A DNA stretch of 64,000 nt from Macrostomum lignano (taxonomy: Eukaryota): assembly GCA_002269645.1 (NCBI GenBank), contig NIVC01001621.1:14320-78319 (forward strand), in the 5' to 3' direction. The notes beneath the pieces were generated by a model. The model saw only the letters and a program-made list of their open reading frames with translations. It did no database searches and was not told the origin of the DNA. Positions 1-64,000 of the stretch are shown here, piece by piece. A program made the translations under genes and the position numbers. Each line of letters begins with the position of its first letter. Position 1 is the stretch's first letter.

Positions 1-109
1 CAGCAGCCCAAACTTTATTAACAATGAACAAGCTAAATAATTATTAAAACTACGCGTAGAGAAAAAACAAATGAAAGTGGACAATAAATTCTGCATGACT
101 CAAACTCAC

Positions 110-19048: not shown

Positions 19049-19308
19049 TCAGTGCAACTCAGACAAGTTATTCAGAAGCAGCGGCTTCTGCTGACTTCTG
19101 GCTCCGGTTGCAGCTGTCGCACGGGTCTGTGCCCCCGCACGATTGGCACGTCGCACCTGACAGGTGAGGATGCGACCGAATGCCCGACGGAAGTCGCGGT
19201 TCCAGCAGGCGTAGATGACCGGATTGCAGAGCGAGTTGCAGTAGCCCAGCCAGAAGGCCACCTTGAATGCCAGCTCGGGAATGGCACAGGACTTGCAGAA
19301 GATCCATT
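19049..19308 (-). CDS. GPCR exon 3 (ECL3, TM7, C-tail)
   Basis: Pyrimidine tract + TAG|(K)[43 protein letters not shown]...TGA. Confidence 0.92.
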
Positions 19309-32628: not shown

Positions 32629-32761
32629 TTTATTTGTCACTGTTGTAAGCTACTTTCAGTTCAGTAGTAAGTTACAATGTCAACCCTAATTAATGCACAC
32701 TACCAACTGCACTAATTAGCAATCAGGTAAGCCACTCCTTAATGCTGCTTCACTTTTTATT
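32629..32761 (-). other. Candidate polyadenylation signals of the RNF213-like gene (AATAAA at 32756-32761 and 32629-32634)
   Basis: Two minus-strand AATAAA hexamers 55 and 180 nt after the stop codon. Confidence 0.45.
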
Positions 32762-32815: not shown

Positions 32816-33827
32816 TTAATCGTTGCGGTTAAGCCAGACCCACAGCAGGCCAGCGTGTCGGCACAGCAGTCGCTTGTCGAAGCGGTCAAACACGCCCACG
32901 TACTCGTCCGAGATGTCGCCGAGTTCGCACAACGGATAGTCCGACAGGGCGGTCTCGCTGCGCAGGTCCAGCGCCAGCAGCTGGTGAAGACGCTCGCTAA
33001 GCAGATCCCGCCTGCCCGACATGCCGCTGGGCAGGGGCGAATCCGGTGACGCGATCGGCAGCTGACGCTCGCCCCGACAGGCGTCGGGCAGGCAGTGCTC
33101 AAGCATGCCGGCATTGAGCAGCAGCTGCCAGCGCAGCCGGTCCAGACGCAGCCAGAGAGCCCGGGCGTCGGTGACGCGAGCGGCGCGTAGGCAATCCGGC
33201 AAGCCGTTAGCAGCGCCGGAATCAGCTGACGAAGTCGACGGCATGCGAAGCACCTCGGCAGAGAAGCGGCTGAGCTCTAGGCTGGCGGGAGACTCCGGCT
33301 GCATGACGCAGAGGAACTTGATAACGGTGAGCAGAGTGTCCTCAACTAGGCCGGTAACTGTGGCCAGGTCGGAGCCGAGGCCGTTCAACAGGTCCTGCTC
33401 AAGGCCGAGGTCCAGCCGCTCCGACTGGCCGGGCGCGCAGCGCCGGAGTCTATCAAGCAGCTCCTTGACGTTGAACTCCTCCTTGTAGATGATCAGCCTG
33501 GGATGGCCAACAATTCGGCGACGCCCGCGAAGGCACCGATCGGCTAGCTGGGTCTGCAGGCCGGTGAAATTGTATTCAAGCCGGCCGCCTTCGCCTACCC
33601 GCAGCGAATAGGCGGCGTTGCCTAGCAACAGCGGCAGCAGGTCGCGTTCAGCGTCGTAAGTGATCACAGCCGACTGTGTCAAGCCGCTCTCGCCTTCGCC
33701 CTCGCCAACAGCGCCGAGATCTACGGGTTCGGCAATCTCCGGGCCCAAGTTGGCCAGCTCTAGCAGGCGGTTCTGTGTGTCAGCCAGGAGCTGCATCAGC
33801 GCCACTATACAGCGGCCCCACTGGCGC
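32816..33827 (-). CDS. RNF213: RNF213-like terminal exon (C-terminal domain)
   Basis: RQWGRCIVAL...VITYDAERDLLPLLLGN...EYNFTGLQTQL...WVWLNRND-TAA. Confidence 0.92.
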
Positions 33828-36800
33828 CTGGAAAGGTCAAGGAAAATATTTTATTCAAAACCAGTTGATCAACATCAGTGCTGCAGGTATGACAAGTGTT
33901 AACTAAACATCCAATTCGAGTCCGTGCTTGTTCACGGAAATTGGCTCAAGGGGCTGTCATGCGATTCACGGCCTTGAAGGCCAACCCCCAAGGCACAGTG
34001 AAGTGTACATGCCTAACGATAAATAAAGTTAGGGCTGCTGTACACTCCTGTATGAGTGTGTGCCTGCTCAGGGGAGTCGGCGGAATGGACAGTAATGCCT
34101 CTCGCCGGTTGTGTGACAATGTGGCGCTTAGAGTGCGCCAGGGTGCACATGGCCCCTGCCTTCTAAAACTAACAGCGGAATGTCGCCGAAGGAATTCATT
34201 AAGCAATTAATGAAACAAACAGCGCACCTGCTAGGCAGTAGGGCTGCAACAGGCCAAGAGCCGGTGCATTCAACTCCAGCTTTATCAAGCGCCAATCTGC
34301 CCGAGTCTTTGTACTTGGCGTAGCTCAACCGATCGCGCAGGTCGTTCCAAACTAGCTGGAAGATTTTCACCGCCTCTGTCCAACGCCCGTTGCGCCTGGT
34401 TCGCAGACTGTCGATGGTGGCTGAGGCGGACTCGGCCTCAGCGAAGCTCAGATTGCCGCTATGCACGGCGACAAGATCCGCGGCCAGCCAGGCCAGAATC
34501 GGCAGCGAGCGGATGTGCCGCAGCACCGGCTCCAAGTCGAAGAACTCGCGCACCAACGCGAACTCGTCGGTGGCAGCGCCGCTGAGCTCGCGCAATCGCT
34601 GGGCCGCGTGTTCAACGGTGACAACCTGACGGTAGCGCCAGACAGCCGCCTGCTCAGGCTGCTCACTGTCTACTCGGCTAGTCTCGTGTACCAGACTCAC
34701 TAGCGAGCTGGTGTCGCTCACCTGATAGAATTGAAATTATAATTATTGGAATTCAGAAGCGCAGGGATGTTGAAAGGTAAAAGTTGAAATGCCATCATCG
34801 GGCAGGTGATGAAAGTTTCTGACGGCGTCGACTCATTATTATAAGAAGACGTATCAAAAACTATCGTCATCCCTGTCAGCAGCACTCATCACCTGTATAT
34901 CTCTGTTTGTGCGTTTTTAACTAGTTCGATCACGTCTCAATGCGTTGGCGGCATTGGCAGATATATGTAGAACTAAATTAAAGAGTATTGAGATGGCCAT
35001 ATATAGTCCCGAAACGGGTCGAAAAGTTAAGGACTGGGACCGCAGGATTGGGGACTGAAGGATTCGGAACTAAAGGACTTGGAACTGAAGGGTTGGAGAT
35101 GGAAGAATTGGGACTGAAGGACTGGAATCGGGACTGAAGGATTGGGGACTGAAGGGTTGAGAATGAAGGATCGGGACTGAAGGACCGGGACTGATGGACT
35201 GGGACTGAAGGATCGGGACTGAAGGGTCGGGACTGAAGGACCGGGACTGATGGACTGGGACTGAAGGACCGGGACTGAAGGACCGGGACTGATGGACTGG
35301 GACTGAAGGACCGCGGGACTGATGGACTGGGAATGAAGGACCGGGACTGATAGACTGGGAATGAAGGACCGGGACTGATGGACTGGAAATGAAGGGTCGG
35401 GACTGATGGACTGGAAAAGAAGGACCGGGACTGATGGACTGGAAATGAAGGGTCGGGACTGATGGACTGGAAAAGAAGGACCGGGACTGAAGGACTGACG
35501 ACCAGCATAAGATATTATTTTGTTTAAATACTATATCGTTATTATACTATTTCAGTCTCTCAGGGTGCAAAACTGACCTGTACATCGGCCAGTTGCCTAT
35601 TAGCAGTCTGCAGCCGTTCCGCCAGTTTCTCAATGACAGCAGACAGAATTCGATCTCGAAGTAGATTCTCAGTCTCGCGGCGCTGATCCTGAGTAGCCAG
35701 CTGCAGTTGACCAGGCCGACTATGAGCTTCGGCTAGCGCACCGAGAGCCAGATGAATAGCCAGACAGGCATCCTCGCTGCTGTGCCCGCTAGCCTGACAG
35801 AATCTGGCCGAGTCGCGTTGAAAGTGCTGCCGCATTGAGTCGGCGTTGGCGGCCTCCGGTCGGCCAGCTAGGGAGGCCAGAGACAACAGCATGCGGGTCA
35901 GTGCGACTGCCACGGGAGTGAGGTTGCGGACTGACTGCGCTTGGCCAGTGCTGTTGAGGTCCACAAAGCCGCGAGGGCTCTGATCGTCGCGGGCTAGCAG
36001 CGGGTTGTTGCCAGCGGCCGAGTTGTGCTGCGAGCCGCCAATGGGAGCGGAACAGTCCGGGCAGGTGGCCAGTTCCATGGGGCGGCCGCACTGCGGGTTA
36101 TGGGGTGGGGGCCGTGCGGCTTAGCCAGCTGAGAAATGCTTTTTGCAATCTGACTGTCAGCAGCGTGACTGTCAGCAGCGTGACTGTCAGCAGTGTGACT
36201 GTCAGCAGTGTGACTGTCAGTAGTTTGACTGTCAACAGTGTGACTGTCAGTAGTTTGATTGTCAGCAGTTTGACTGTCAGCAATGGGACTGTCAGCAATG
36301 TGACTGTCAGCAGTGTGACTGTCAGCAGTGTGACTGTCAGCAGTGTGACTGTCAGCACTGTGACTTGTTGGGAGTTGCTGAGATGTTGACTTGCTGACTT
36401 GTTGAGATGTTAAAGCTAATATGAAGTTAATTTAACATAAAATAACACAGAAAAAACTTACATTTCCAATATAGTATGGATGACCGTTTGGGCAAACTGA
36501 AATTTGAAATTAATATATCGAAATACAAAAAAGACTATAAGAAGTTTTGATTTCATACTGCATGGTTTTAAAAGAAAAAAACTAAAAGCACAAGCTATTA
36601 CTCACAGTAGACAGTAGGGTTATCGCCTTCCACACCCTTCTGCTTGCGGACAGCTCTGTAGAGCTCGTGCAGCTGATCGTGCGGCATGCACGGCAAATAG
36701 TAGGCCGACACGTCGTCGGTTGCCATGGCAACAAATAGTTTTACTAATATGTCTTCAGTATCGCGTTTAATAGCCAGAGTATAGGCCATGTGAAGTGCCA

Positions 36801-39800
36801 GGCAGGCTAGAGAGTGGGCACCGTTCCAGCTGGCATCCAGTATGGGCTGCAGGCGCTGCTCATAAATCTCCTGGAGTTGAGTCGAGGATTACTAATTAGC
36901 TGACCAGGCATGGTTTCGAATTGCTCTTGCCGTTTACCCATGACTTTATTAAATAACGGGTATGGTTATAAAATGGGTGCCAGCATTAGCTGGGGTAATC
37001 GAGGGTGTGTGGCGACCCCCGAATCTTTGGATTGAACAGCCGTACGCAGCCTTCAGAAGCGCCGCGCAATTGCTGCGGCTGAGCTGTCGGTTGCACACCT
37101 ATCTTAATTATATTATTGGAGGCTAGCAGTCAGGTCTATACTCTAGACTGCTCACACAGGGTCTCAGTGCCTTGGAGGACACTCCAGCTAATACAGACAG
37201 CAGTACAAATATGCCCCCAGTTACCTTGGCTCTTTTTGACATGTGCTCAGCCATGAGTTCCACAGCATTGGCCAGATTTTGATTACTACAGTCGCTTTCA
37301 ATATGCCGAGCTTTGTACACTCCGGCCGCGGTTGCCAGAGCAATCAGATGCCCATCGGACTTATTTAGCTTTATCTTCTGCGGGGATGAGTTGATTAAGA
37401 GTACAAGCATGTAGATATAGAAATGAGTTGCAATGCATTGTGCACAGGACACATAAATGAATGTGGCCGCCCACGCAATCAAACCAAGGACAACTAAAGC
37501 AACGTTTATAAAGGACGCAAAACTCGAAATCTATGGAAAATGTTTTGAAGGCCACTTTTCGCAGAAAAATACACTAAGGAGATAGGAAGTTTTCATTTTT
37601 TCAGCACAAAGATTGTTATTGCTTGCTTTCGATAGGAGGGCTGAGCCTCTCTTATAGCTCTATTGATATTCATAGAGCTTTTCGTTCAGAGAATCAGGAT
37701 TCTATGTTAATTTGTATTCTACGTACAAATTGCACATGTCCCTTGCCTAAAAACCATTAAAAATGGCACGGCTCATCTTATGGGTTTTTATGAGTCTATT
37801 TTGTCATTCTCAGCTGACTGTGTAACAGTATGTGTGACAGAAATGATAAAATAGATTTATAAAACCAAAGATTTGAGCTGTGTCATGAAATTTAATGATT
37901 TTTAGGTACAGGAAATGTACGTAGAATACAAAATGAACATAGAATCCTGATTTTCTGAACGAAAAGCTTTATGAATATCAATAGAGCTATAAGAAAGGCA
38001 CAACATATCAAAAGATGAACATTGGATCTGCCTCCTATCGAAAGCTTCCTATCTCCGTTGTGTATTTTTCGACGAAAATTGGCCTTCAAAACATGTTCCA
38101 TAGATTTCGAGTGTAGCGTCCTTCTACTCGTACTTTAGTAGTCCTTGAATCGAACCAGGGGCCGCTACGGTTTAGTAAATCCGAATAAAATCCGAATTGA
38201 TTTGCAACCCACCTTCATCGCGGCCGAGAACTCGGGCTTTCCAGACAAATAGCCGGTCCAAAAAGCGTCGCGCAGTTTTCGATAAGCAGGCGACAGACAG
38301 AGCAGCAGCTCGGGCTCCTGACAGCGGCCTTCGAGGCTTCTCAGCTCGGCGGCAAAGACGACGCCGAGGCCTGTGGGATCGCGGCGCAGAGCTGCCAGGC
38401 CAGCTGACACGCCGAGCCGACGGCACAGGCAGCGGAGCAGGTAGATACGAGGCCAGGCCTGTCAATTAGTAGGCGTTTCTTTCTATCTACATGTGCTATA
38501 GGCCCAAAGTCGTTTGAGTTGTCTGAGTTGCGTCCACGGATATTAGAATAACTAGATGGGCAACAGGCATATATACTTATTAGTAAAACAGCTTTCTACT
38601 TTCAGTTCAGTAGCAAAGAAGAATACATGAGCTATTTTATAAAAATAAAGGCAGCTGAAACGACTGATAAGTTTAAAAGCCCCAAAAGCTTGCAGGCGTA
38701 AACAGCTTGCTAATTGGTTCAGCAATAATGTACATTGGCCAGTCCACTGAAATGTACATGGCCGCTTTAGGCTGGAATTCCGAGAGAAAGGCAATAAAAT
38801 TGGGGCGGGGCGGGGGGGAATGTGGAAAGGCGCGGTTGGAGGGTTTAAGCTGTGGGGAAAGAGCCAATAAATGAGCCTTGGCTTTAAAAATACATTTAAA
38901 TGCTCCGGTTTAACTTACTACTGAACTGACAGTAGCTTACACGCAAATGTGCTGACTGGCCCATCTAGTTATTCTGTGGTTGCATCCAAAGCGCATCTGC
39001 GTCACTTAATGAATTTAGAAACGCATTTCGAATTTATAACGACTCTGTTGAGTCTACTTGAAATGAATACTCGTAGAAAGTAAAGCGCTAACACAACGGC
39101 TATAATGATATACCTGATGCTTGTCTGCCAGCCGCTGGAGAAAATCGGCACTGCCCAGAGCTGAAGCAACAGACCCGCTGGCAATGATTCTGTTAGCCAG
39201 CAGAGCAAGGCCAATACGCCACGTGGCGAGCCGACGCAGCTGGCCAATCAGGCTGGACACAAAGGCTGGCGTGACTGAGTTGGACCCGGCGCTGACAGCT
39301 GGCGGCAATGGCTGCGGCAGATTGGTGGACAGCCAGTCGAGAGCTTGATGCCAGCGGCGCTCGGGGTCCATCCTGAGTGTGTAACGAGGCGATTGTGTCT
39401 GGCATCAGTAGGAGCAAGGGGCGCAGCCAAGGTGGGGTTCTGTTCCAAAATTATGACAATTGGCGCCGCAAAAGACCCATTTAGATGGCGCCCCCCCCCC
39501 CAACTCAAATGAGATTGTCTCCACTCAAATGAGATTGTTTCCCCAACTCAAATGAGATTGTGTCCCAACTCAAATGAGATTGTGTCCTCACTCAAATAAG
39601 ATTGTCTTCAACTCAAATGAGATTGTGTCCTCACTCAAATAAGATTGTCTTTAACTCAAATGAGATTGTGTCCTCACTCAAATAAGATTGTCTTTAACTC
39701 AAATAAGATTGTGTCTCCAACTCAAATAATATTGTGTCCCCGCTCAAATGAAAAAGCGCCCCCACGTGAAACGGCACTCTACTCAAATGAAATAGCACCC

Positions 39801-42800
39801 CCACGTGAAACGGCGCCCCCACGTGAAACGGCGCCCCCATTCAAATGAAATAGCGCCCCCCACATGAAACGGCGCCCCCATTCGAATGAAATAGCGCCCC
39901 CACATGAAACGGCGCCCCCATTCGAATGAAATAGCGCCCCCCACATGAAACGGCGCCCCCATTCGAATGAAATAGCGCCCCCACATGAAACGGCGCCCCC
40001 ATTCGAATGAAATAGCGCCCCCCACATGAAACGGCGCCCCCATTCAAATGAAATAGCGCCCCCACGTGAAACGGAGCTCCCACTCAAATGAAATAGCGCC
40101 CCTCACGTGAAACGGAGCTCCCACTCAAATGAAATAGCGCCCCTCACGTGAAACGGAGCTCCCACTCAAATGAAATAGCGCCCCTCACGTGAAACGGCGC
40201 TCCCATTCTAATGAAATAGCGCCCCCCACGTGAAACGGCGCCCCAATCAAATGAAATGGCGCCCCAACGTGAAATGGCGCCCCCACGTGAAACGGCGCTC
40301 ACTCAAATGAAACGGCGCCTCACTCAAATGAAACGGCGCCTCACTCAAATGAAACGGCGCCCCACTCAAATGAAACGGCGCCCCACTCAAATGAAATAGC
40401 GCTTACCTCGTCAATTCAACCAAACAGGCATCTTCAAAGCAGTGCAATATAATTAGCCGCAGATGGAATTCCTCCTCAGGCTGAATTAGGATCAGCACAT
40501 GAGTTAAGTGCTCAGTGAGTTGCTCTACTACTAGTTCATGATGATAGGACAGTAGTAACTGCAGTACATAAGACCGGAAAACCACGCCTTCACCGTCTGA
40601 GCGGTCTTGGAAGAAGCCAAAATTGTCGTCGGGACTGCACCTGAAATTACAATACGGCAAATTATTTAACTAGGCTTGTTTCCGGAATTAATAAAATACA
40701 ACTCGTCAACAATACTTGTATAAGGGACGCTGAACTTTTATACAAGTTTTGTATCAGCATATAAACTTTAGTAAGCTAAATGAAATGTTTATGTATACTA
40801 AACAGTAAGTTTGTGGTATCTCATGGAACAGTTGCTGAGATGCCAATTGGCTCAATGGGGAGTTGCTGAGATGCTAAAGCTCAATGGGGAGTTGCTGAGA
40901 TGCCAATTGGCTCAATGGGGGGAGTTGCTGAGATGCCAATTGGCTCAATGGGGAGTTGCTGAGATGCTAAAGCTCAATGGGGAGTTGCTGAGATGCCAAT
41001 TGGCTCAATGGGGGGAGTTGCTGAGATGCCAATTGGCTCAATGGGGAGTTGCTGAGATGCTAAAGCTCAATGGGGAGTTGCTGAGATGCCAATTGGCTCA
41101 ATGGGGGAGTTGCTGAGATGCCAATTGGCTCAATGGGGAGTTGCTGAGATGCCAATTGGCTCAATGGGGAGTGGCTGAGATGCCAATTGGCTCAATGGGG
41201 GAGTTGCTGAGATGCCAATTGGCTCAATGGGGGGAGTTGCTGAGATGCCAATTGGCTCAATGGGGGAGTTGCTGAGATGCCAATTGGCTCAATGGGGAGT
41301 TGCTGAGATGCCAATTGGCTCAATGGGGAGTTGCTGAGATGCCAATTGGCTCAATGGGGAGTTGCTGAGATGCCAATTGGCTCAATGGGGAGTTGCTGAG
41401 ATGCTAAAGCTCAATGGGGAGTTGCTGAGATGCCAATTGGCTCAATGGGGAGTTGCTGAGATGCCAATTGGCTCAATGGGGAGTTGCTGAGATGCTAAAG
41501 CTCAATGGGGAGTTGCTGAGATGCCAATTGGCTCAATGGGGAGTTGCTGAGATGACAATTGGCTCAATGGGGGGGAGTTGCTGAGATGCCAATTGGCTCA
41601 ATGGGGAGTTGCTGAGATGCCAATTGGCTCAATGGGGAGTTGCTGAGATGCCAATTGGCTCAATGGGGGGGAGTTGCTGAGATGCCGTCTTTAACTCCAT
41701 CAGTGAAGAGACTCCTGAAGAAGATTATCTGAGAAACCGTTTAATAGATAAGTAAAAATAAATATTTCCACCAACCGAGTGACATAGTTAAGCAGATAGG
41801 CACATAGTTCTGGTTTGGGCGCCTGGCGCATGTTAGATCCGAAGCATAACCGGGACACGACGTCCATTAGGAAGGCGTTGCATCGATTTCTAAACTTTTC
41901 TAATAAAGGATGCGGTCCAGCGGCGGCTTTAGCGGCTTTCTTAGCGTCCGATTCGGTGAGCTGTTTGCGGCAGCGCGGACAGGAGTTCTTGGTTTTGTGG
42001 CCGCCAGAAACTGCCAGACGAAGGCACCGACCGCAGAGATGGTCGCCGCAGCTCAAAGCCGCGATGGTGCTACGCGAGTCCTCGCAAAGCTGACACCTTG
42101 TGACCCTGAGAATTGGCGAGGATAGATAGAAACTTTCATTGATAAATAGAAGACAACAGATTGCTTCAGCTAGATCTGGATCACAGATACTAAAATAACT
42201 TGATGGGCCACTCAGGCATATATACTAAGTAAAACAACTTTCTATTTTCAGTTCAGTAGCAAAGCTAGGAATAAAACATAAGGAGGAATACATCCATAAA
42301 AACCACAGATACTAGAATAACTAGATGTGTCACTCGCAATTAAAATTGTGAAAAAGTAAAGCCTCTACTCTTTTTTCAGTAGTTGTCACGCGAATGTAAT
42401 TTAAATTTGATGTAAAATTCCTTTCCTTCCTCATGGAAGAGCAAATGGGGTTAAGAATGAACAAGCATTTGTTAACTCAATGTACACAAATGAACGCAAG
42501 ACGGACGAAACTCAGCCTAGGGGGGGGGGAGGGGCAGGCCCAATCTAGCTCAGCCAATGAGAGAGCAGTAGAGAGATGTCTGGGCGCCAGCACTAATTCT
42601 CTCTTGCTCTCTATGTCAAGCACTGAATTTGGGAATTTTACATTTTTATAGTTTTCTACAGTCTTAAGTCTTAAATTCGTTTATTTTTGAACCGGTAAAA
42701 CTCAGCAGACATGCTTATTTAATTAGCCTGCTTGTAGAATTAGGCACAGACATATTTTGCAGCTTTAAAAACATAAAATTTCGTTTGAAAGTAGATAAAT

Positions 42801-54800: not shown

Positions 54801-57800
54801 TCCAAAGCGCTAGTTGGCGCTAAAACCCATATTCTATGGCGCTAGATTGGCGCTAAAACCTATATTCTATGGCGCTAGATTGGCGCTAAAACCTGGTCCA
54901 AAGCGCTAGTTGGCGCTAAAACCCATATTCTATGGCGCTAGATTGGCGCTAAAACCTGGTCCAAAGCGCTAGATTGGCGCTAAAACCTATTCAATGACGC
55001 TAGATTGGCGCTAAACCTAATCTTAAGCGCTAGAGTGGCGCTAAAACCTATTCAATGGCGCTAGATTGACGCTAAAACCTATTCTATGGCGCTTTATTGG
55101 CGCTAAAACCTATTCAATGGCGCTAGATTGACGCTAAAACCTATTCTATGGCGCTTTATTGGCGCTAAAACCTATTCAATGGCGCTAGATTGGCGCTAAA
55201 ACATATTCTATGGCGCTTTATTGGCGCTAAAACCTATTCTATGGCGCTAGATTGACGCTAAAATCTATTCTACGAGTATGGCGCTAGGACTCTGACGTGA
55301 TAAAAATCACCCACAGATAAATATGACCAACAACACAAGAGTAGTTTGACAGGAAATTTCAATTCGAACTTACTTGCTAAGATCCTTTTCGTCCTGCAGG
55401 CGAGAGCACTGACTAAATGTCTTAATAATACTGTCAGATGTGCTCCAAGGTGAGCACTGAAAGCTCAGCATATGAGTACCTGGAAGCTCTTTGAACAGAT
55501 TTGACTGAGAATCAGCGCCCAGCATGTTGCTCTTGACAATGGTTTTAGCCAGAGATTTGGAGCTACCCGGCTTGCCGACAACGAAGAGCGGAATTCGCAG
55601 TTTGATGCATACAATCATCATAAATAGGTTCTCGCGTAGAGCGTCATTTTTGGCAATAAAATCTGGCAGTTTAGCGCTGTTTAGAAAGGCCTCTTGACAC
55701 CTTGAAATTGGAGGGATACATTTATATATTTTTTGTATTTATGAATGTACACTTTACAACAGATTCATTGTGTAGTTAATCGTAATCTGAGCTTGACTTG
55801 GTTGGTTCTAGGCTTCTGTCTATGGCCAAGACTGACAAATCTGAGCTTGATTTGATTGGTTCTGGGCTTCTGTCTATGGCCAAGACGGACGAATCTGAAC
55901 TTGATTTGGTTGGTTCTGGGCTTTTGTCTATGACAAAAACTGATAAATCTGAGCTTGATTTGATAGGTTCTGGGCTTCTGTCTATGGCCAAAACCGCTAA
56001 ATCTGAGCTTGATTTGATTGGTTCTGGGCTTCTGTCTATGGCTAAAACCGCCAAATCTGAGCTTGAATTGATTGGTTCTGGGCTTCTGCACTGTCTATGG
56101 CCCAAACCGACAAATCTGAGCTTGAATTGATTGGTTCCGGGCTTCTGTCTATGGCCCAAACCGACAAATCTGAGCTTGAATTGATTGGTTCTGGGCTTCT
56201 GTCTATGGCCCAAACCGACAAATCTGAGCTTGAATTGATTGGTTCCGGGCTTCTGTCTATGGCCAAGACTGACAAATCCGAGCTTGATTTGATTGGTTCT
56301 GAGCTTCTGTCTATGGCCAAGACTGACAAATCCGAGCTTGATTTGATTGGTTCTGGGCTTCTGTCTATGGCCAAAACCGCTAAATCTGAGCTTGATTTGA
56401 TTGGTTTTGGGCTTCTGTCTATGGTCCATCCTGTCTTTGTTGTCTAAGACTCTTTAGTTTTCGCTGACCGGTTTCTTAAGAAACGATTAAAAGATTCAAT
56501 TGAGACTACTGAGAAAAGTAGACGAATAAAGATTTTAATCGTAATGTCTCTAATAGTCTGAAAAATGTTTAAATGCTATCCAAGTCGGTAACAAGCCGGT
56601 TCACCTGTAGATCTCCCGGTAGAGATCACGATCAGTGAGGGGCCGGCCAGCTGTGTCGCACAATCTGGCGGCCAGTTCAGTCAGGTAAATCTGCTTATTC
56701 TCGTATGACAGACGGCTATAATAGCAGATGGCAGCAGTCAGCAGTGCAGCCCGTGTGTAGTCTGTGATAGCCGGCACCGCTAAATGATCATCGGGCTCAT
56801 TCACAATGTTTTTAACAATAATCTGTTGAAAATCGATGAGCCAGTTAACCACTTGGATGACTTTTTCCACTTCTCGCAGCGACACAAACTTGGTCTCATC
56901 GTTGATTCGACGCATGAAGGCCTTGAGGAGTTGAAATAAATGTGTTAAATTACGAGCGAATATCTAGCAAGACAAAAACTATGCAAACAGTGAAATCCTA
57001 CACCTAGGCAGTGAAATCCCACTCCTTGGAATCTCATATTGTGAGAAATCCCACTCCTTGGAATCTCATACAGTGAGAAATCCCACTTCTTGGAATCCCA
57101 TTTAATGAAATCCCACTCACTGGAATCCCATTTAATGAAATCCCACTCACTGGAATCCCACTCAGTAAAATCTCACTCACTGGAATCCCACTCAGTAAAA
57201 TCCCACTCACTGGAATCCCACTCAGTGAAATCCCACTCACTGGAATCCCACTCACTGGAATCCCACTCACTGGAATCCCACTCAGTGAAATCCCACTCAC
57301 TGGAATCCCACTCAGTAAAATCTCACTCACTGGAATCCCACTCAGTAAAATCCCACTCACTGGAATCCCACTCAGTGAAATCCCACTCACTGGAATCCCA
57401 CTCACTGGAATCCCACTCACTGGAATCCCACTCACTGGAATCCCACTCAGTGAAATCCCACTCACTGGAATCCCACTCACTGGAATCCCACTCACTGGAA
57501 TCCCACTCAGTGAAATCCCACTCACTGGAATCCCACTCACTGGAATCCCACGGAATTCCACTCAGTGAAATCCCACTCACTGGAATCCCACTCAGTGAAA
57601 TCCCACTCACTGGAATCCCACTCAGTGAAATCCACTCACTGGAATCCCACTCACTGGAATCCCACTCACTGGAATCCCACTCACTGGAATCCCACTCAGT
57701 GAAATCCCACTCACTGGAATCCCACTCACTGGAATCCCACTCACTGGAATCCCACTCACTGGAATCCCACTCACTGGAATCCCACTCACTGGAATCCCAC

Positions 57801-60800
57801 GGAATTCCACTCAGTGAAATCCCACTCACTGGAATCCCACTCACTGGAATCCCACTCACTGGAATCCCACGGAATTCCACTCAGTGAAATCCCACTCACT
57901 GGAATCCCACTCAGTGAAATCCCACTCACTGGAATCCCACTCACTGGAATCCCACTCACTGGAATCCCACTCACTGGAATCCCACTCAGTGAAATCCCAC
58001 TCACTGGAATCCCACTCACTGGAATCCCACTCAGTGAAATCCCACTCACTGGAATCCCACTCAGTGAAATCCACTCACTGGAATCCCACTCACTGGAATC
58101 CCACTCACTGGAATCCCACTCAGTGAAATCCCACTCACTGGAATCCCACTCACTGGAATCCCACTCAGTGAAATCCCACTCACTGGAATCCCACTCACTG
58201 GAATCCCACTCAGTGAAATCCCACTCAGTGAAATCCACTCAGTGAAATCCACTCACTGGAATCCCACTCACTGGAATCCCACTCACTGGAATCCCACTCA
58301 GTGAAATCCCACTCACTGGAATCCCACTCACTGGAATCCCACTCAGTGAAATCCCACTCACTGGAATCCCACTCAGTGAAATCCCACTCACTGGAATCCC
58401 ACTCACTGGAATCCCACTCAGTGAAATCCCACTCACTGGAATCCCACTCAGTGAAATCTCACTTAGTGAAATCCCACTCACTGGAATTCCATTCAGTGAA
58501 ATCTACTAAATTAAACAATTTTTTTAATTTTTTTAATCTTTCGATTCACTATTTGGTACCTAATATATACAACAAAATGCCATTTTAGATGTTATATTTC
58601 GGCCAGATTAACTTGATTACAGCAATTTAATAATCAAAGATGCAATATACCTGGGAAAAGCGAACCAGCTCGGCCAAGTGTCCGCAGTGCGGCTGCACCA
58701 GCTCGTGAACGCGAGCCTCAATCATGCGCTGAATATACTTGGCCTCAGCATCCTCGGACAGGTTGCCGAAATCCCACAGCACATTGATAAGGCTAAGCGG
58801 CAGAGGTTTGACTCGATAGACAAGGTGGCGCATGGGGATCGCACCGAATCGATCCTGAGTCGCATCTTTGCGCACCCAATAGCCCAGGCCGCTGTTCTCC
58901 AGACGCTGGATCATGGCCTCAGAGTGCTGCCTGTACGGGTTGCAGGCAGCCACACAGCGCAGGCCGCTAGTGAAGTTAATGGGACGGCCGTGAACCCGAC
59001 CGTCGCACATGATCTCTTTGATTAAGCCGACTGCGCTGGTTGTGTTTACCTGGAGTATTGTTGTGCAAAAGTGTTATTTTTTATGCTATTTATTGATATG
59101 GTTCATAGCCAAGCTGTTTACAAGTCTACTCTTTTTTCAGTAGTTTGTCTGCGCAGTGTCACTTCATTTAATGTGGCAGCTAAAATTTCCTCTTCTTCCT
59201 CGGTGTTGTGGCCTCGGGAGTATTTGAGTTAAGAATGATCAAGCATTCAACTCGATGTGCACACACAAACGCAAGACGGACGAAAATCGGCCTAGGAGAG
59301 GGGCAGGCCCAATCTGGCTCAGCCAATGAGAGAGCAGTAAGGAGAGGTCAAAGTCAGACGGACCAAACCCGGCCTAGGGAGCAGGCCCAATCTCGCTCAG
59401 CCAATGAGAGAGCAGTAAGAAGAGAGGGTCACAGTCAGACGGACGAAACTCAGCCTAGAGGATAGGCCCAATCTCGCTCAGCCAATGAGAGAGCAGTAAG
59501 AAGAGAGGGTCACAGTCAGACGGACGAAACCCAGCCTAAGGGGCAGGCCCAATCTAGCTCAGCCAATGAGAGAGCAGTAAGAAGAGAGGGTCACAGTCAG
59601 ACGGACGAAACCCAGCCTAAGGGGCAGGCCCAATCTAGCTCAGCCAATGAGAGAGCAGTAAGAAGAGAGGGTCACAGTCGGACGGACGAAATCCAGCCTA
59701 AGGGGCAGGCCCAATCTAGCTCAGCCAATGAGAGAGCAGTAAGGAGAGAGGGCAAAGTCAGACACAAGCGGGCAACAGGAAAGCCCAGCTGCTTATCAGC
59801 CTGGCTGAGGGCTGGGGGGCCACCCCTTTTTCTCTTGCTTGCCATGCACTGGATTTGGCTTGCTTCGCTGTTGCTGGATATTTAGCAACATTAAAAACCG
59901 CCACCCCAGACCCAGTGAGCCTGAAAAACATTGCGTCATGGCATGCAGTAAGACGTTGAGCTACTCTGCTCCTGCAATATCGTTCCAGACTCGCTTTTAA
60001 CTAACATTCTTTAGAGTAAGAAATTTATGAGGCTAAAATCTGGCGATTATTATTTTTAATACTATTATCACAATCAGCAGCTAACCGACTCACCTCGTCA
60101 AAGAACAGAACAGTATAGAGTTGGCCAGACCGATTTGCCTTATTTATACTTTTATAATTTCTGTCGGCCAGTTTCTCAGCCTTGCGAACAACATTAACGA
60201 TAGAATCTTCCGTGATGCCGCCGTGCACTTTAAGAACAATCATATTGTCAATCCTGAGCGTGCTTGGCCGCATCAGCTTGGCCAAGTATTCCACTAGGCG
60301 AGTCTTGCCGCATCCAGTTTCGCCCATAACAACAACGGGTATGCCGCAGCGGAAGCGCATCACAATGGCTAGCATTTTCTTCACATTGTCCAGAGTCAGC
60401 TCGTAGCTGGGATCGGGATCTGGCACCATACCGGTGGTCTGCGATTGTGTGCAGTTTTAATTAAAAATCAATTTTACGGTGGAATCAAACCGACTGCAAT
60501 ATTGATAACTTTTCAGACCAGAGTAAATTATCGGATGCAGTGCTCAGTAGACTTATTTCGGGCTCATCGAGGGTCGCCTTTGAAAATTTGAAACTCCATC
60601 GTCGAAAAGTCTCTTGCCCAACAAAACTTTTTGACGATGTTAAATTCGAGCTCAAGCAAAGTTTGCCAGCGTTCGAAGTTTGAAGAATCGAGCCCGTAAA
60701 GTTTAGAGTTGATAAAGAATCGAGCTTGTGAAGAATCGAGCTTGTGAAGACTTGAGCTTGTGAAGACTCGAGCTTGTGAAGACTTGAGCTTGTGAAGACT

Positions 60801-63800
60801 TGAGCTTGTGAAGACTTGAGCTTGTGAAGACTTGAGCTTGTGAAGACTTGAGCTTGTGAAGAATCGAGCTTGTGAAGACTTGAGCTTGTGAAGAATCGAG
60901 CTTGTGAAGAATCGAGCTTGTGAAGAATCGAGCTTGTGAAGAATCGAGCTTGTGAAGAGTCGAGCTTGTGAAGAATCGAGCTTGTGAAGAACCGAGCTTG
61001 TGAAAAACAGAGCTTGTGAAAATTTAATTCGGTGATTTAGTGTCTGACAATTCACTTTTCGACGATTGTTGAATTTTCAAATTATGAAATTCATTCATAA
61101 GGCGTTTAAGAGTGGGATACGCTTTAAAAGCTACATATATACACAGTAAAAAAGAAATCAATCAGTATCACACCTGATAGCCAAGTATAGTCCTCAAACG
61201 AGCAATTTTATCAGGCCGCTTGATGGTGTCGAAATTCTCGTCTAGCGGCACCCGTTGAGCGCGCAGAATGCGAAATAGTTGAGGCGGCATAACGCCCGGC
61301 TGAATAACAGCCCGAGTCTTGGCGTCCAGCAGGTTCCCGTTGCGGTCAATAACGAAGCCGAAGAAGGTGAAAGACATCCGGTCGTGATTGAAAAGAACAT
61401 AAGGGTGCACCTCGTGCTCCCAGCGACGCTTCAGATTATACTGCTGCAGCAGCTGCTCAGCTGAGCCGCTTGCCACTGCTGCCGGCGCTGATGACTGGGC
61501 ATCGCGACCGCCAGATTCGTCCGATATGTTTAACGACCTTGGAGAGAAAATTGCAAACAGTGAGAATGGTACCAATACCAATCATCATGACTATTACACA
61601 GGGCATACAGTGGCCTAATTATTTTTTAATCAACAGTGTACCAGATAGTATCGACAAAATGGGCGAGCCCGAGTGTACAAAATGGGCGAGCCCGAGTCGA
61701 CAAAATGGGCGAGCCCGAGTGTACAAAATGGGCGAGCCCCCGAGTCGACAAAATGGGCGAGCCCGAGTGTACGAAATGGGCGAGCCCGAGTGTACAAAAT
61801 GGGCGAGCCCGAGTGTACAATTGGCTAGCCCGAGTGTACAAAATGGGCGAGCCCGAGTGTACAAAATGGGCGAGCCCCCGAGTCGACAAAATGGGCGAGC
61901 CCGAGTGTACGAAATGGGCGAGCCCGAGTGTACAAAATGGGCGAGCCCGAGTGTACAATTGGCTAGCCCGAGTGTACAAAATGGGCGAGCCCGAGTGTAC
62001 AAAATGGGCGAGCCCCCGAGTCTCGAAAGGGGTTGATCGCTTGTATACATGCATATTTAAATACAATTAACAATCTCACCTAGTAGCAAAATCTTTCGAC
62101 ATGAGCAGCATACACCGAACAATAAATTCCCTAAAGCCCGGCAAATCGTCCTTCATCACTTCGCTACAGAACACTGAATTGTCGCAGTCTTCCATTTGTT
62201 TATTGAAAAATTTGGCAAAGTTGATCAATTCCTGCCAAGCAGGCGCAGTCAGACCGCAGTGCTTCAACAGAGCGGCCAGAATCTCGACAGGTTGATCCAT
62301 CACGCCGGATGCCAGTGGTGGCGGCGAATTCAATCCACGGTCGAAGCAATCCAGCGCCAATGCGGGCCGGCGCATCCAGCCCTGCTTGAAATTCTCCGTA
62401 TCATACAGCGGCTCCCAGGGTGAATTGTAGCTAGCAGCATCGCCTGACTCATCTCTGATGCGCTGCAATCGTTGCAGAGCTTCAACAGGCCCCAGACACC
62501 GGATTCTTGGCAGCATGGCGAGCACATGGAATTCATCCCGACAGAACAGATTCGGCGAATGCTCGACAAGGTACAGATCGCGCTGGTCTCGCCGCCACAC
62601 GCGGCCGGTGGAGTCGACAAGGCCGCCAAAGATGAACAGCTGAGTCAGACAGGCGTCTAGGCCAGTTTGCACCTCGCGGGCTAGGTCCAGGTGAAACACC
62701 TGGCCACAATAGGAGGTTCTAGCAGCTCCGGCAGCGGCATCGTCCAGTAGCTGATTGTCAACAAAGAAGCGAAACAGCTGGTCCGAAGGCAGATGGCTGT
62801 CGTGCCAGGCAAAGATTCTGGCTGCTGGCATCTGCCCTGCAGTTTAGCTTCGGCCATGCGTTGGCAGATTAGCGATTTGCCCATGCCAGACCTGTCTGAG
62901 TGGACTAGCACCACCTGTAGGATTAATATACAATCAGCTATTTAGTCAGCTTTGGGTCAAATAGTTCACTGGGTCAAATGGTTCACTGGGTCAAATGGTT
63001 CACTGGGTCAAATGGGTCACTGGGTCAAATAGTTCACTGGGTCAAATGGTTCACTGGGTCAAATGGGTCACTGGGTCAAATGGTTCACTGGGTCAAATGG
63101 GTCACTGGGTCAAATAGTTCACTGGGTCAAATGGTTCACTGGGTCAAATGGTTCACTGGGTCAAATGGGTCACTGGGTCATGGGTTACTGGGTCAAATGG
63201 TCCACTGGGTCAAATGAGTCACTGGGTTAAATGTGTTATATTTCATCAGTAGTATGAGATTGTAAATATTTTTGAGACCAAGATAAAAACTTTAATTTCA
63301 CGACAGCACCTTGGGGGATGCAATTAAAATGGAGAACATCTCGGCAGAAATTCTTGCAACAAGCCAAGAAAATCTTGCTCAAAACCATGAATAAAGTCTT
63401 CTCTGAAGATTTTCAAAGCGAAACACTGTCTATGGGCCAACCATCCTTGGGCGGGAACGTACGTGAAATATAGCTCCCGTGCAAGAGCAGAACGGTCACA
63501 TTTTTGGTACACTGCCTGTCACGCTTGTGACCGTTACGCTTGACTGTGATGTGACCGTCAGTTAATAATGTGACCGCCAACGGCGCTAATGTGACAATCA
63601 AATGTGACCGTCAAATAAACGGGCTCTCGTGTGACCGTCAATATGACGGTCCAATGAGAGAGCCAAATAAACTGTCACTATTGAGGGTCACAATGAAGGG
63701 TCAAATGTGATACCGTTGTTTGGGTGTCATAAAATGGTCACAAAACTGACTATCTGACCGTCCTACTTTTATACGGGTAAAGAGAGCAAAACAAATTTAC

Positions 63801-64000
63801 AGTAAAAGAAGCAGAAGCAGAGGCAGAATAGAACCGCAAGCTAAACAGAGAGCATACCGATCCAAGCTGGGCAGAGAAGCAGAGAATAATGGCCATCTAG
63901 AACATAATCTTGGCCCCACTACGAGTGCCTACCTGACTATTGGCGGGCTGTTGGCCACGAAGTCGATTTGACACCCAGCGGCAGAGCTCAGCACGATCCG
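32816..64000 (-). CDS. RNF213: RNF213/mysterin-like giant AAA+ ATPase/E3 ubiquitin ligase, 3' ~9.56 kb of CDS in 25 exons; 5' part outside window; two apparent frameshifts
   Basis: Motifs SDRSGMGKS, GETGCGKT/VLFFDE, AACNPYR, GKPGSSKS/VIILDEIGLAEDSPSMPLKTLHPLLEDG, SNWALDPAKMNRG, GSSFPRDQ, FPIPLINRMEKH, RING, and RZ finger CPNGH..CGRPM..CPDC..IGGSQH occur in RNF213 order. Intron phases join except at 47621/46535. Confidence 0.95.
34228..34721 (-). CDS. RNF213: RNF213-like penultimate exon (VWRYRQVVTVEH)
   Basis: Phase 0 to 2; ends LLPSR. Confidence 0.9.
35030..35500. repeat. 14-bp-based minisatellite
   Basis: GGGACTGAAGGACC / GGGACTGATGGACT. Confidence 0.9.
35578..36090 (-). CDS. RNF213: RNF213-like exon beginning at the RZ CGRPM cysteine
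   Basis: CCGCAG|CGRPMELATCPDCSAPIGGSQH...; 513 nt. Confidence 0.92.
36150..36365. repeat. 15-bp minisatellite in the intron splitting the RZ finger
   Basis: GTGTGACTGTCAGCA. Confidence 0.93.
36462..36496 (-). CDS. RNF213: RNF213-like 35-nt micro-exon encoding (F)CPNGHPYYIGN of the RZ finger
   Basis: TTTCAG|TT TGC CCA AAC GGT CAT CCA TAC TAT ATT GGA AAT|GTAAGT; phase 1 to 0 exactly bridges its neighbours. Confidence 0.92.
36606..36870 (-). CDS. RNF213: RNF213-like exon preceding the RZ finger (YYLPCMPHD)
   Basis: EIYEQRL...SAYYLPCMPHDQL...PTVY; GTGAGT donor, phase 1. Confidence 0.9.
36970..37098 (+). mobile_element. 5'-truncated SINE copy
   Basis: AAAATGGGTGCCAGCATTAGCTGGGGTAAT...GTCGGTTGCAC matches the SINE 3' half. 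Confidence 0.72.
37225..37377 (-). CDS. RNF213: RNF213-like exon (KIKLNKSDGH...MSKRAK)
   Basis: 153 nt; CCGCAG acceptor, GTAACT donor. Confidence 0.72.
37485..38147. mobile_element. Foldback hAT-like MITE family D
   Basis: CAAGGAC...GTCCTTG; arms are long inverted repeats; TSD AATCAAAC/AATCGAAC. Confidence 0.8.
38213..38458 (-). CDS. RNF213: RNF213-like exon (AWPRIYLLRCLCRRLG...YRKLRDA)
   Basis: 246 nt, phase 0-0. Confidence 0.85.
38535..38978. mobile_element. hAT-like MITE family A (TIR CACAGATACTAGAATAACTAG-like)
   Basis: Inverted termini; TSD GTTGCGTC/GTTGCATC. Confidence 0.8.
39114..39372 (-). CDS. RNF213: RNF213-like exon (MDPERRW...LADKHQ)
   Basis: Phase 2 to 0 fits neighbours. Confidence 0.78.
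39490..40400. repeat. Composite minisatellite (21-22-bp zone, then ~41-bp zone)
   Basis: CTCAAATGAGATTGTGTCCCAA then GAAACGGCGCCCCCATTCGAATGAAATAGCGCCCCCACAT. Confidence 0.92.
40407..40640 (-). CDS. RNF213: RNF213-like exon (VFRSYVLQLLL...LHCFED)
   Basis: Phase 2-2, GT-AG. Confidence 0.9.
40825..41690. repeat. 31-bp minisatellite
   Basis: GGGGAGTTGCTGAGATGCCAATTGGCTCAAT. Confidence 0.95.
41776..42105 (-). CDS. RNF213: RNF213-like RING exon
   Basis: CQLC..CGDHLCGRC..CPRC followed by FRNRCNAFLMDVVSRLCF. Confidence 0.92.
42887..44140 (+). mobile_element. Crypton-like (tyrosine-recombinase transposon) remnant; ORF 43255-43836
   Basis: SRFGEL..STLAREKWAMNVFQTW..ELTKNEINELLHFVFEVRKENGEKYPPGTL resembles the N-terminal domain of Crypton/DUF3504-associated proteins; subterminal hairpin 42909-43023; catalytic domain absent; no clear TSD. 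Confidence 0.7.
44156..44842 (-). mobile_element. Tc1/IS630-like deletion derivative with long TIRs; HTH ORF 44276-44629
   Basis: TA duplicated at 44154-55 and 44843-44; ~170-bp imperfect TIRs; paired-like HTH..PRGGR..HTH; no DDE domain. Confidence 0.85.
44968..45393. mobile_element. Non-autonomous TIR element with GGG termini and internal CGCCTAAATTTCA repeats (Merlin-like by ends)
   Basis: TIR GGGG.CGCTT.CATAAGACCTAAATTTCACAACGCC; duplication CTGAAATG (8 bp) versus the empty site in the 38535 copy. Confidence 0.7.
45744..45847 (-). CDS. RNF213: RNF213-like small exon (MLERENITF...RSKVMG); absent from ORF track
   Basis: TTTCAG acceptor, GTGAGT donor; 104 nt, phase 0 to 2, bridging into the RING exon. 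Confidence 0.82.
45880..46150. repeat. 29-33-bp minisatellite
   Basis: CCTTAGTTTATGACCCTCTTGATAATGCAG. Confidence 0.9.
46237..46535 (-). CDS. RNF213: RNF213-like exon (LNVPFIIQILF...WIAQVSNC...WDRVQCVAFFLRHV)
   Basis: CTCAG acceptor, GTGAGT donor. Confidence 0.8.
46635..47585. repeat. 21/24-bp G-rich minisatellite
   Basis: TTGAGGAGCGATTCTAATGGGGTA alternating with TGAGGGAGATTCTAGAGGGTA. Confidence 0.93.
47621..48391 (-). CDS. RNF213: RNF213-like exon (AFVDKEDNL...GAFPFAW...ETPCGRAL); frameshift between ~48010 and 48075; donor 47621 or 47617
   Basis: Two overlapping ORFs, 48007-48336 and 47549-48010, both resemble RNF213 E3-module sequence. Confidence 0.78.
48486..48633 (-). CDS. RNF213: RNF213-like small exon (DWLSFEAAKDENVTEAGTF); absent from ORF track
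   Basis: CGCAG acceptor, GTGAGG donor; phases 1 to 2 fit both neighbours. Confidence 0.82.
48741..48840. repeat. (TCAG)n microsatellite
   Basis: ~25 units abutting the donor at 48848. Confidence 0.95.
48849..49476 (-). CDS. RNF213: RNF213-like exon (VTTFDRLL...FDTEIQF...HLEEL)
   Basis: 628 nt, phase 0 to 1. Confidence 0.9.
49664..50344 (-). CDS. RNF213: RNF213-like exon (LYDVLNQYY...LGLGTHR...FPIPLINRMEKH)
   Basis: 681 nt, phase 0-0. Confidence 0.94.
51078..51561. mobile_element. Family D-related MITE (one long arm)
   Basis: CAAGGACTACTT...AGTAGTCCCTG; interior matches family D arm; TSD degenerate. Confidence 0.65.
51590..52171. mobile_element. hAT-like MITE family B, uninterrupted copy
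   Basis: Perfect 21-bp TIR CACAGATACTAGAATAACTAG; perfect TSD TACAATCC. Confidence 0.9.
52193..52588 (-). CDS. RNF213: RNF213-like exon (EFFGLRDFFSLVK...GSSFPRDQ)
   Basis: 396 nt, phase 0-0, GT-AG. Confidence 0.93.
52796..53487. mobile_element. Foldback hAT-like MITE family D
   Basis: CAAGGAG...GTCCTTG; TSD CTCTGGGG/CTTTGGGG; arms homologous to the 37485 copy. Confidence 0.8.
53627..53960 (-). CDS. RNF213: RNF213-like exon, Walker B VIILDE
   Basis: VIILDEIGLAEDSPSMPLKTLHPLLEDG...SNWALDPAKMNRG. Confidence 0.95.
54108..55290. repeat. GGCGCT-rich composite minisatellite (63-bp higher-order unit)
   Basis: GGCGCTAGATTGGCGCTAAAGCCTGGTCCAAAGCGCTAGTTGGCGCTAAAACCTATATTCTAT. Confidence 0.93.
55374..55700 (-). 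CDS. RNF213: RNF213-like exon, Walker A GKPGSSKS
   Basis: IAKNDALRENLFMMIVCIKLRIPLFVVGKPGSSKSLAK...SFQCSP. Confidence 0.95.
55790..56425. repeat. 54-bp minisatellite
   Basis: GGTTCTGGGCTTCTGTCTATGGCCAAAACCGCTAAATCTGAGCTTGATTTGATT, ~11-12 copies. Confidence 0.94.
56605..56921 (-). CDS. RNF213: RNF213-like exon (FVSLREVE)
   Basis: AFMRRINDETKFVSLREVEK...CYYSRL; phase 0 to 2. Confidence 0.92.
56990..58505. repeat. 15-bp minisatellite
   Basis: CACTCACTGGAATCC / CACTCAGTGAAATCC, ~95 copies. Confidence 0.96.
58651..59049 (-). CDS. RNF213: RNF213-like exon (AACNPYR, LVYRVKPLP)
   Basis: VNTTSAVGLIKEIMCD...VRFSQ; 399 nt. Confidence 0.94.
59125..59760. repeat. Family-B MITE relative whose interior is amplified as a ~62-66-bp tandem array
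   Basis: 59125-59340 matches 42363-42570; the unit GACGGACGAAA..GGGCAGGCCCAATCTAGCTCAGCCAATGAGAGAGCAGTA is repeated ~7 times. Confidence 0.8.
60094..60438 (-). CDS. RNF213: RNF213-like exon, Walker A GETGCGKT and Walker B LFFDE
   Basis: PDPSYELTLDNVKKMLAIVMRFRCGIPVVVMGETGCGKT; 345 nt, GT-AG. Confidence 0.95.
60690..61020. repeat. 15-bp minisatellite
   Basis: GAGCTTGTGAAGACT / GAGCTTGTGAAGAATC-type units. Confidence 0.92.
61174..61537 (-). CDS. RNF213: RNF213-like exon
   Basis: SLNISDE...RRWEHEVHPYVLFNHD...LRTILGYQ; phase 2 to 0. Confidence 0.92.
61655..62030. repeat. 23-bp minisatellite
   Basis: AAAATGGGCGAGCCCGAGTGTAC. Confidence 0.93.
62080..62914 (-). CDS. RNF213: RNF213-like exon, Walker A SDRSGMGKS with degenerate Walker B (VFHLD); frameshift near 62843
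   Basis: TACAG acceptor, GTGAGA donor; two overlapping ORFs 62681-62914 and 62076-62831. Confidence 0.88.
62950..63230. repeat. 17-bp minisatellite
   Basis: GGGTCAAATGGTTCACT. Confidence 0.93.
63933..64000 (-). CDS. RNF213: RNF213-like exon (partial, window edge)
   Basis: DRAELCRWVSNRLRGQQPANSQ|GTAGGC, phase 0 into the next exon. Confidence 0.6.

Follow-up and report, generated by a model that had tools for sequence, protein, structure and literature searches.

The minus strand of the window, by which the whole analysed stretch of 64,000 nucleotides is meant (positions 14,320 to 78,319 of contig NIVC01001621.1), very probably carries the 3' 58% of one copy (BOX15_Mlig015539g1) of the RNF213/mysterin orthologue of Macrostomum lignano. 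Judged from its sequence, this part of the gene occupies positions 32816-63998 and reaches from AAA2 through the C-terminal domain (CTD). A preliminary description of the DNA, made from its letters, had proposed an RNF213/mysterin protein of an invertebrate. The identity was borne out by colinear matches in the PDB, the pattern of the AAA motifs, an RZ finger scoring 72 bits and the presence of the CTD, and the invertebrate is the flatworm M. lignano. The sequence was already public under uninformative names, and the gene is a member of the known RNF213 family.

Gene model

The gene model was built from stop-to-stop open segments, splice-site enumeration and alignments to solved RNF213 structures. 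The visible part of the gene runs on the minus strand from 63998 to the stop codon TAA at 32816-32818 and consists of 25 exons; all features given below lie on this strand. After bridging of two single-base gaps the 25 exons encode 3,176 aa with a single terminal stop, and zero in-frame stops occur within the 3,176 codons of the bridged model. The splice-site check of the model found GT-AG at the borders of all 24 introns. The 25 exons and about 3,200 aa counted beforehand agree with this final model of 25 GT-AG exons, and the six motifs quoted beforehand were all found on the minus strand where they had been placed.

Contig NIVC01001621.1 (assembly GCA_002269645.1) terminates at window position 64000 (25,994 bases compared in reverse complement, 0 mismatches). 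Hence, the RNF213 gene is cut by the assembly itself and not by the window alone, and the N-arm with stalk and CBM20, the linker and AAA1 are absent from this contig. The full domain layout that had been claimed is therefore present from AAA2 to the CTD, but its AAA1 and N-arm lie off the contig. The first visible exon, counted as exon 1 (DRAELCRWVSNRLRGQQPANSQ, 63933-63998), is identical to residues 2326-2347 of PAA82849.1, the intact homeolog described below, and ends with the donor CAG/GTAGGC; the gene extends 5' beyond this exon, past the contig end. An additional exon of 93 nt (63402-63310) that brought in a third frameshift was rejected, because the intact homeolog splices exon 1 (frame f2) straight to 62914.

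Exon 2 (62080-62914) contains AAA2 and the first frameshift, and its bridged translation aligns to mouse RNF213 with E 6e-28. Exon 3 (61174-61537) lies between AAA2 and AAA3. Both Walker motifs of AAA3 are located in exon 4 (60094-60438), which matches human RNF213 with E 1e-72 and is assigned to AAA_5 by Pfam, and the remainder of AAA3 is in exon 5 (58651-59049). For exon 6 (56605-56921) the acceptor was set at 56921, where PAA65746.1 and homologues read ...SQ/AFMRR; the same sequences ruled out an acceptor at 56963. Exon 7 (55374-55700) carries Walker A and exon 8 (53627-53960) Walker B of AAA4, followed by exon 9 (52193-52588). The strongly conserved exon 10 (49664-50344) covers the AAA5 region. 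Exons 11 (48849-49476) and 12 (48486-48633) lead to exon 13 (47621-48391), which covers the AAA6/hinge region and holds the second frameshift. Exon 14 (46237-46509) is followed by exon 15 (45744-45847), a local divergence hot spot with 89% identity to the homeolog. The idea of two mutually exclusive versions of exon 15 was dismissed, as each copy has one exon 15 only.

A RING-like finger, CQLCEDSRSTIAALSCGDHLCGRCLRLAVSGGHKTKNSCPRC at 42095-41970, is encoded by exon 16 (41776-42105). The E3 module continues with exons 17 (40407-40640), 18 (39114-39372), 19 (38213-38458) and 20 (37225-37377), the last of which is 100% identical to the homeolog. Exons 21 to 23 encode the RZ finger and are described with it. 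The end of the E3 module and the start of the C-terminal domain are in exon 24 (34228-34721), and exon 25 (32816-33827) contains the C-terminal domain and the TAA. A poly(A)-signal-like hexamer AATAAA, a consensus match only, is located 55 nt past the stop (32756-32761). The RNF213 gene has a GPCR exon as a neighbour, which shares 99% identity with a protein of M. lignano.

Identification as RNF213

The protein pieces were compared with all PDB chains (phmmer), and strong matches were obtained to RNF213 only. The E-values against RNF213 in the PDB were 2e-44 for the AAA2 to AAA3 junction, 1e-72 for AAA3, 1.6e-133 for the AAA3 lid to AAA5 and 1.7e-17 for RING to RZ; AAA5/6 matched weakly (E 9e-4). 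On the human chain 9jwg the matches are colinear (2022-2238, 2248-2937, 2951-3286, 3628-3821, 4079-4337 and 4373-4629). Furthermore, a single BLASTP segment covers 3,334 aligned positions with a full-length mussel protein of 4,701 aa. With E-values between 1e-72 and 1e-133 for solved structures of RNF213, a chance match is excluded.

From AAA2 to the C-terminus, the parts of the flatworm protein follow each other in the order known from mammalian RNF213 (mouse 6TAX/6TAY/7OIK, human 8S24/9G08/9JWG). Six Cys/His of the RZ finger at equal spacing and the CTD are likewise found in both, and the E3 module of the flatworm protein contains a RING-like finger in the place of the mammalian RING. Identity, estimated by eye, is about 50% in AAA3/AAA4, whereas the hinge, AAA5/6 and some of the E3 module show barely detectable similarity. 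The flatworm copy also differs in being cut by the contig end and in carrying two frameshifts.

The probability that the protein is another RZ-finger or AAA-RING protein, for example a ZNFX1-like helicase or a relative of midasin or dynein, is negligible. An RZ finger with catalytic Cys and general-base His is common to ZNFX1, but it is the sole feature in common: ZNFX1 is an RNA helicase, with a superfamily-1 core upstream of the RZ finger, and has no dynein-like AAA ring and no RNF213-type CTD, whereas the flatworm protein has both and Pfam detected no helicase domain in it (RNA_helicase PF00910 with 17.9 vs. 21.5 bits, P-loop only). The AAA3 piece also matches midasin weakly (E 2e-12); however, matches to midasin and ClpB are confined to the P-loop region, and those to RNF213 are colinear over the entire 3,176 aa and tens of orders of magnitude stronger. 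Splicing of the exons followed by HMMER/BLAST, the check suggested in the preliminary description, gave a protein that matches RNF213 colinearly.

AAA core

In AAA2 the Walker A motif reads SDRSGMGKS (62899-62873) and the Walker B motif, VFHLD (62699-62685), is without Glu. The corresponding motifs of mouse RNF213 are SERAGVGKS and IFHID-I (flatworm VFHLD-L), the catalytic Glu being missing in both proteins. AAA3 contains GETGCGKT (60324-60301) and LFFDE (60108-60094), AAA4 contains GKPGSSKS (55576-55553) and IILDE (53947-53933), and both of these Walker A motifs are identical in mammalian RNF213. The flatworm motifs of AAA2, AAA3 and AAA4 each align to the corresponding motif of mouse or human RNF213. 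By its motifs, the flatworm AAA2 is of the ATP-binding type without catalytic Glu, and AAA3 and AAA4 are, in the same terms, complete ATPase sites. In mouse RNF213, AAA2, whose Walker B is without Glu, binds ATP, and the competent units are AAA3 and AAA4 (PMC7311170). The degenerate Walker B of the first visible AAA unit and the two complete Walker A/B pairs reported beforehand therefore correspond to the pattern of the mouse enzyme.

RING, RZ finger and C-terminal domain

The RING-like finger of the flatworm protein has the spacing C-x2-C-x11-C-G-D-H-L-C-x2-C-x12-C-x2-C. All Cys/His expected of a RING had been claimed for it. Eight candidate ligands are indeed present, but in contrast to mammalian RNF213 an Asp stands at the canonical His position, with a His one residue later, and the Pfam RING models remained just below the cut-off (zf-C3HC4_3 with E 1e-5; 25.7 vs. 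27 bits). The region aligns weakly to the RING of human RNF213 (domain E 0.004). At the ligand-4 site several flatworm paralogues have no His (C-N-D-R-I-C, C-A-D-R-L-C). As the RING is dispensable for the activity of mouse RNF213, the off-consensus RING of the flatworm need not matter.

The RZ finger is coded across three exons. Exon 21 (36606-36870) ends with ...NPTVY and one base of the next codon. Exon 22 is a micro-exon of 35 nt (36496-36462; cag/TTTGCC...GGAAAT/gtaagt) that encodes the finger's first half, (F)CPNGHPYYIGN, with the zinc ligands Cys and His. Exon 23 (35578-36090) starts with CGRPMELATCPDCSAPIGGSQH (36090-36025) and encodes the rest, with the putative catalytic Cys in the first codon, two zinc Cys and the putative general-base His, the roles being assigned after PMC11549300. 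In the human RZ finger C4516 is the nucleophile and H4537 the general base, and the others are Zn ligands (PMC11549300). The flatworm sequence CPNGHPYYIGNCGRPMELATCPDCSAPIGGSQH corresponds to C-x3-H-x6-C-x8-C-x2-C-x8-H. This spacing equals that of human C4505, H4509, C4516, C4525, C4528 and H4537, so that all six conserved residues are present, as the preliminary description had stated. Pfam PF20173 (RZ finger; cut-off 27 bits) was recognised with 72 bits and E 3e-20 when the micro-exon was included, and with 40 bits without it. A reading of the finger through the intron was rejected because of the wrong spacing of His, which the micro-exon restores.

The C-terminal domain matched with E 4e-13 to human RNF213 (positions 4373-4629) and aligns to mouse positions 4682-4974. 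In mammals this domain binds the E2.

Intact copy and frameshifts

An intact copy of the gene is deposited as PAA82849.1 (BOX15_Mlig015539g5, 5,501 aa) on contig NIVC01000446.1 and falls into the same 90% cluster. It is the same gene in another subgenome. All 25 exons are present in order at its locus, and the gene model aligns to residues 2326-5501 ungapped, with 98.9% identity and 35 substitutions. Intron 4 measures 18.2 kb in this copy vs. 1.0 kb in the window copy, and intron 15 measures 148 nt vs. 3,638 nt. The upstream 1,745 aa of PAA82849.1 align to the N-arm/linker of human RNF213 (E 2e-41). Pfam found no family in the N-terminal part of PAA82849.1, and the label 'Mab-21 domain-containing' that UniRef gives to an N-terminal fragment had no counterpart in the Pfam result. 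PAA65739.1 is the third copy (g2), and several near-identical genomic copies were seen for Mlig015539.

Two frameshifts had been mentioned in the preliminary description, and exactly two are required, at about 62821 and about 48032. According to the DNA comparison with PAA82849.1, one C is lost at each of these sites and the frame of the window copy is interrupted. At the first site (62819-62822) CCC is shortened to CC (intact copy CAGCAGCCCAGAATC, window CAGCAGCCAGAATC), and the codon-bias frame changes from f0 to f2. At the second site (48031-48033) CC is shortened to C (intact copy CTGTCCGAGACT, window CTGTCGAGACT) with a change from f1 to f0. The paralogue PAA74374.1 is continuous across both sites, and the alignment of AAA2 to mouse RNF213 is unbroken once the first frameshift is bridged. 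A 122-nt intron (48137 to 48014) in place of the second frameshift was discarded, as the codon bias is coding in f1 to about 48076 and the homeolog runs through this region without a break.

For the window copy compared with g5, a dN/dS of 0.19 was calculated (dS 0.026, dN 0.0049). Over 1,070 shared residues 6 private amino-acid changes were counted for the window copy, 3 for g2 and 7 for g5. With this dN/dS and no excess of private changes the window copy is not an old pseudogene. Purifying selection has acted on it through practically its whole history, until very recently.

The window copy could also be a real, very young pseudogene, one of three redundant homeologs decaying after recent polyploidisation; we consider this possible, if rather doubtful. 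Pilon polishing, for which both Illumina and RNA-seq reads were used, has left the two frameshifts in the deposited assembly, and the annotators kept them in a GenBank model truncated at both sites. Polishing is hampered, however, where reads map to several homeologs, and both lesions are single-base homopolymer contractions. A one-base loss in a short run is at the same time the commonest natural indel, and with three near-identical copies (g1, g2 and g5) the loss of one would cost the animal little. The copies also differ greatly in intron content, for example by an insertion of about 3.5 kb in intron 15 of the window copy, and exons 14-15 are unusually diverged between them. Against decay stand the lack of in-frame stops in 3,176 codons, GT-AG kept in 24 of 24 introns, the dN/dS of 0.19 with 6 private changes vs. 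7 in g5, and the preservation of every catalytic residue in the window copy.

The assembly was generated with PacBio/Canu and polished by Pilon with Illumina and RNA-seq reads. The genome of M. lignano consists of three subgenomes 1.4-2.4% apart, and reads multi-map. Single-base homopolymer contraction is a typical residual error of a PacBio CLR consensus. This kind of assembly, together with the multi-mapping reads, favours residual homopolymer errors. Thus, the two single-C losses are somewhat more probably leftover long-read assembly errors than real lesions.

GenBank annotation

The GenBank model between the two frameshifts is PAA65746.1 (BOX15_Mlig015539g1), a 'hypothetical protein' of 1,691 aa. 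It agrees with our gene model at each of the 1,686 residues that lie between the frameshifts (100% identity). Its start is the first ATG to follow frameshift 1, and its end is a stop made by frameshift 2. In the GenBank annotation viewed downstream of PAA65746.1 no gene is called within 10 kb; hence, annotation is missing from the latter half of exon 13 as far as about exon 18, a stretch that contains the RING. An exact look-up of the last-exon ORF gave no match.

Taken as it stands, this annotation might mean that the locus encodes split products, the AAA-only PAA65746.1 and a separately translated E3/RZ/CTD protein, which is very improbable. The 1,691-aa model does start at an ATG right after frameshift 1, and internal 5' ends are conceivable with the widespread trans-splicing in M. 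lignano. However, the model starts and stops precisely at the frameshifts, which is what an annotation artefact would produce, and the frames on either side of each shift continue within single exons and are continuous in the homeolog and in the paralogues. In addition, the 10 kb following the 1,691-aa model contain no called gene. With a single continuous protein as the preferred reading, the locus corrects a fragmented annotation, in which the 1,691-aa 'hypothetical protein' is part of an RNF213 of about 5,500 aa. Two probable assembly errors are thereby flagged in NIVC01001621.1.

RNF213 in M. lignano and other invertebrates

In M. lignano the RNF213-like genes fall into at least three diverged lineages, Mlig015539, Mlig025717 and Mlig021635, with others in addition. 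With exon 10 as query, 1,543 relatives at E <= 0.001 were obtained among 1.84 billion representative proteins, and the 1,691-aa PAA65746.1 was matched with 100% identity; exons 13-15 as query for homologous proteins gave no match. None of the matches listed in the homologue search was longer than about 420 aa, hence no full-length RNF213 was among them.

Annotated RNF213-like genes also exist for amphioxus and corals and, among molluscs, for oysters, clams, limpets and mussels. Mlig025717, Mlig021635 and the genes of Lottia, Mya ('R213A/B-like'), Saccostrea ('rnf213-alpha/beta-like'), Sinanodonta and Branchiostoma belong to the same family and have the same architecture, with 32-57% identity over long alignments. 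They are distinct paralogues or orthologues of the window gene. In clam, RNF213 transcripts respond to PAMPs. RNF213 had been described beforehand as little studied outside vertebrates. This is correct as regards function; annotated genes, however, are already available for many invertebrates, M. lignano among them, and the clam transcripts have been examined for their response to PAMPs. The mouse RNF213 structure paper refers to vertebrates only (PMC7311170), and a full-text literature search gave no paper naming RNF213 together with 'flatworm'.

Predicted activity and possible role

In mammalian RNF213, the E3 is turned on when ATP binds to the AAA core, the E2 is Cys-reactive, and Cys and His of the RZ finger act in the transfer. 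If the flatworm enzyme works in the same way, ATP would be held by AAA2 as structural glue and would be bound and hydrolysed by AAA3/AAA4, and ATP binding to the AAA core would switch on the E3. A Cys-reactive E2 loaded with ubiquitin would dock on the CTD/E3 scaffold. Ubiquitin would be passed to the RZ cysteine in the first codon of exon 23, with the downstream His assisting, and then to substrates, for which the RING would not be needed.

With several diverged paralogues in M. lignano and PAMP-responsive RNF213 transcripts in clam, a cell-autonomous defence role for the flatworm RNF213 is plausible by analogy. The preliminary description had put forward antibacterial or lipid ubiquitylation as a possible role, and ubiquitin transfer of the mammalian type would include LPS as a substrate. 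M. lignano is not known to have an interferon system. Extending the mammalian model, we tentatively suggest, at somewhat less than an even chance, that M. lignano keeps an active multi-paralogue RNF213 family which would serve cell-autonomous defence, independently of interferon, as an ATP-gated ubiquitin ligase that works through the RZ cysteine. M. lignano is small and transparent, and transgenesis and RNAi knock-down are feasible. If the suggestion is true, this animal could become the first invertebrate model for ancestral RNF213 function. If the flatworm enzyme is active, the whole RNF213 machine is older than vertebrates and interferon, with its AAA ring that senses ATP, its RZ site for transthiolation and its CTD. 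The practical value of the locus is modest, and knowledge of the RNF213 family is unchanged by it. The Asp-for-His RING and the fast-evolving patch before the RING (exons 14-15) could mark lineage-specific tuning.

Divergence between the RNF213 copies

The window copy of RNF213 and its intact homeolog (PAA82849.1) share about 99% identity over most exons, but only 96.7% in exon 14 and 89% in exon 15. This divergence hot spot lies at 46509-45744 in the window and at 53506-55481 of L001, the comparison locus outside the window. Of the 35 amino-acid differences between the two proteins, 15 fall within the 125 residues encoded by these exons, directly N-terminal to the RING. Hence, dN/dS is near 1 across exons 14-15 by a rough estimate. 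Each RNF213 copy has a single exon 15. Positive selection, relaxed constraint and gene conversion from a paralogue are candidate causes of the divergence.

A further difference between the homeologs concerns intron 15 (45743-42106), with a length of 3,638 nt in the window compared to 148 nt in the intact copy. The ends of the short intron correspond to the first 96 and the last 57 nt of the long one. Thus, the window copy carries an insertion of about 3.5 kb. Two ORFs were found in this intron, one HTH transposase-like (44635-44279, minus strand) and one QRICH1-like (43255-43836, plus strand).

Tandem repeats

Large tandem arrays are housed by the introns of RNF213 and of a GPCR gene. Five are located at 16551-18948 (24-mer, 101 copies), 27245-28215 (15-mer, 64 copies), 46630-47564 (24-mer, 40 copies), 54105-55272 (63-mer, 18 copies) and 57047-58503 (15-mer, 98 copies); further ones are present. 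Spurious long ORFs in all frames are produced by these intronic arrays. Array length is very unequal between the homeologs: the RNF213 intron 4 of the window, for example, spans 1.0 kb, and its counterpart in the other homeolog 18.2 kb. In addition, a 31-nt satellite unit, AGTTGCTGAGATGCCAATTGGCTCAATGGGG or its reverse complement, is repeated in tandem at 40830-41686, in RNF213 intron 16, and again at 8398-8895. The two arrays lie 32 kb apart in opposite orientations. This satellite is a dispersed tandem-repeat family.

Neighbouring genes

The GPCR gene (19049-29335, minus strand) encodes a rhodopsin-family aminergic receptor, alpha-1-adrenergic/octopamine-like. Its first coding exon (29335-28439) covers TM1-5 and its last (19462-19049) TM6-7, both on the minus strand. 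Identity to a UniRef protein of M. lignano was 99%; paralogues showed 88% and 72%. The intron of about 9 kb is crowded with satellites and also contains a plus-strand ORF (25823-26329), probably a transposon remnant. This ORF scores E 2.8e-24 against Pfam PF21788, a TNP-like GTP-binding insertion domain of the THAP9/P-element transposase type. Coiled-coil exons of a liprin-alpha-like gene were identified at 50-3395 on the minus strand (Pfam LIP-1 for 741-1439, E 1.6e-27); this gene extends past the window start.

N-terminal regions and paralogues

A Pfam-A search with the first 2,347 aa of the intact RNF213 copy detected no family at E <= 0.01. A match to the RNF213 N-arm/linker was obtained for residues about 1280 to 2000 (E 2e-41). 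In UniRef, an N-terminal fragment of this RNF213-like family (proteins P0393/P0392, residues 1-2325, outside the window) is named 'Mab-21 domain-containing protein'. One member of the paralogous RNF213-like cluster Mlig021635 of M. lignano (P0399/P0402, likewise outside the window) carries an ankyrin-repeat region label, which may point to a swapped N-terminal domain in this flatworm paralogue of RNF213.
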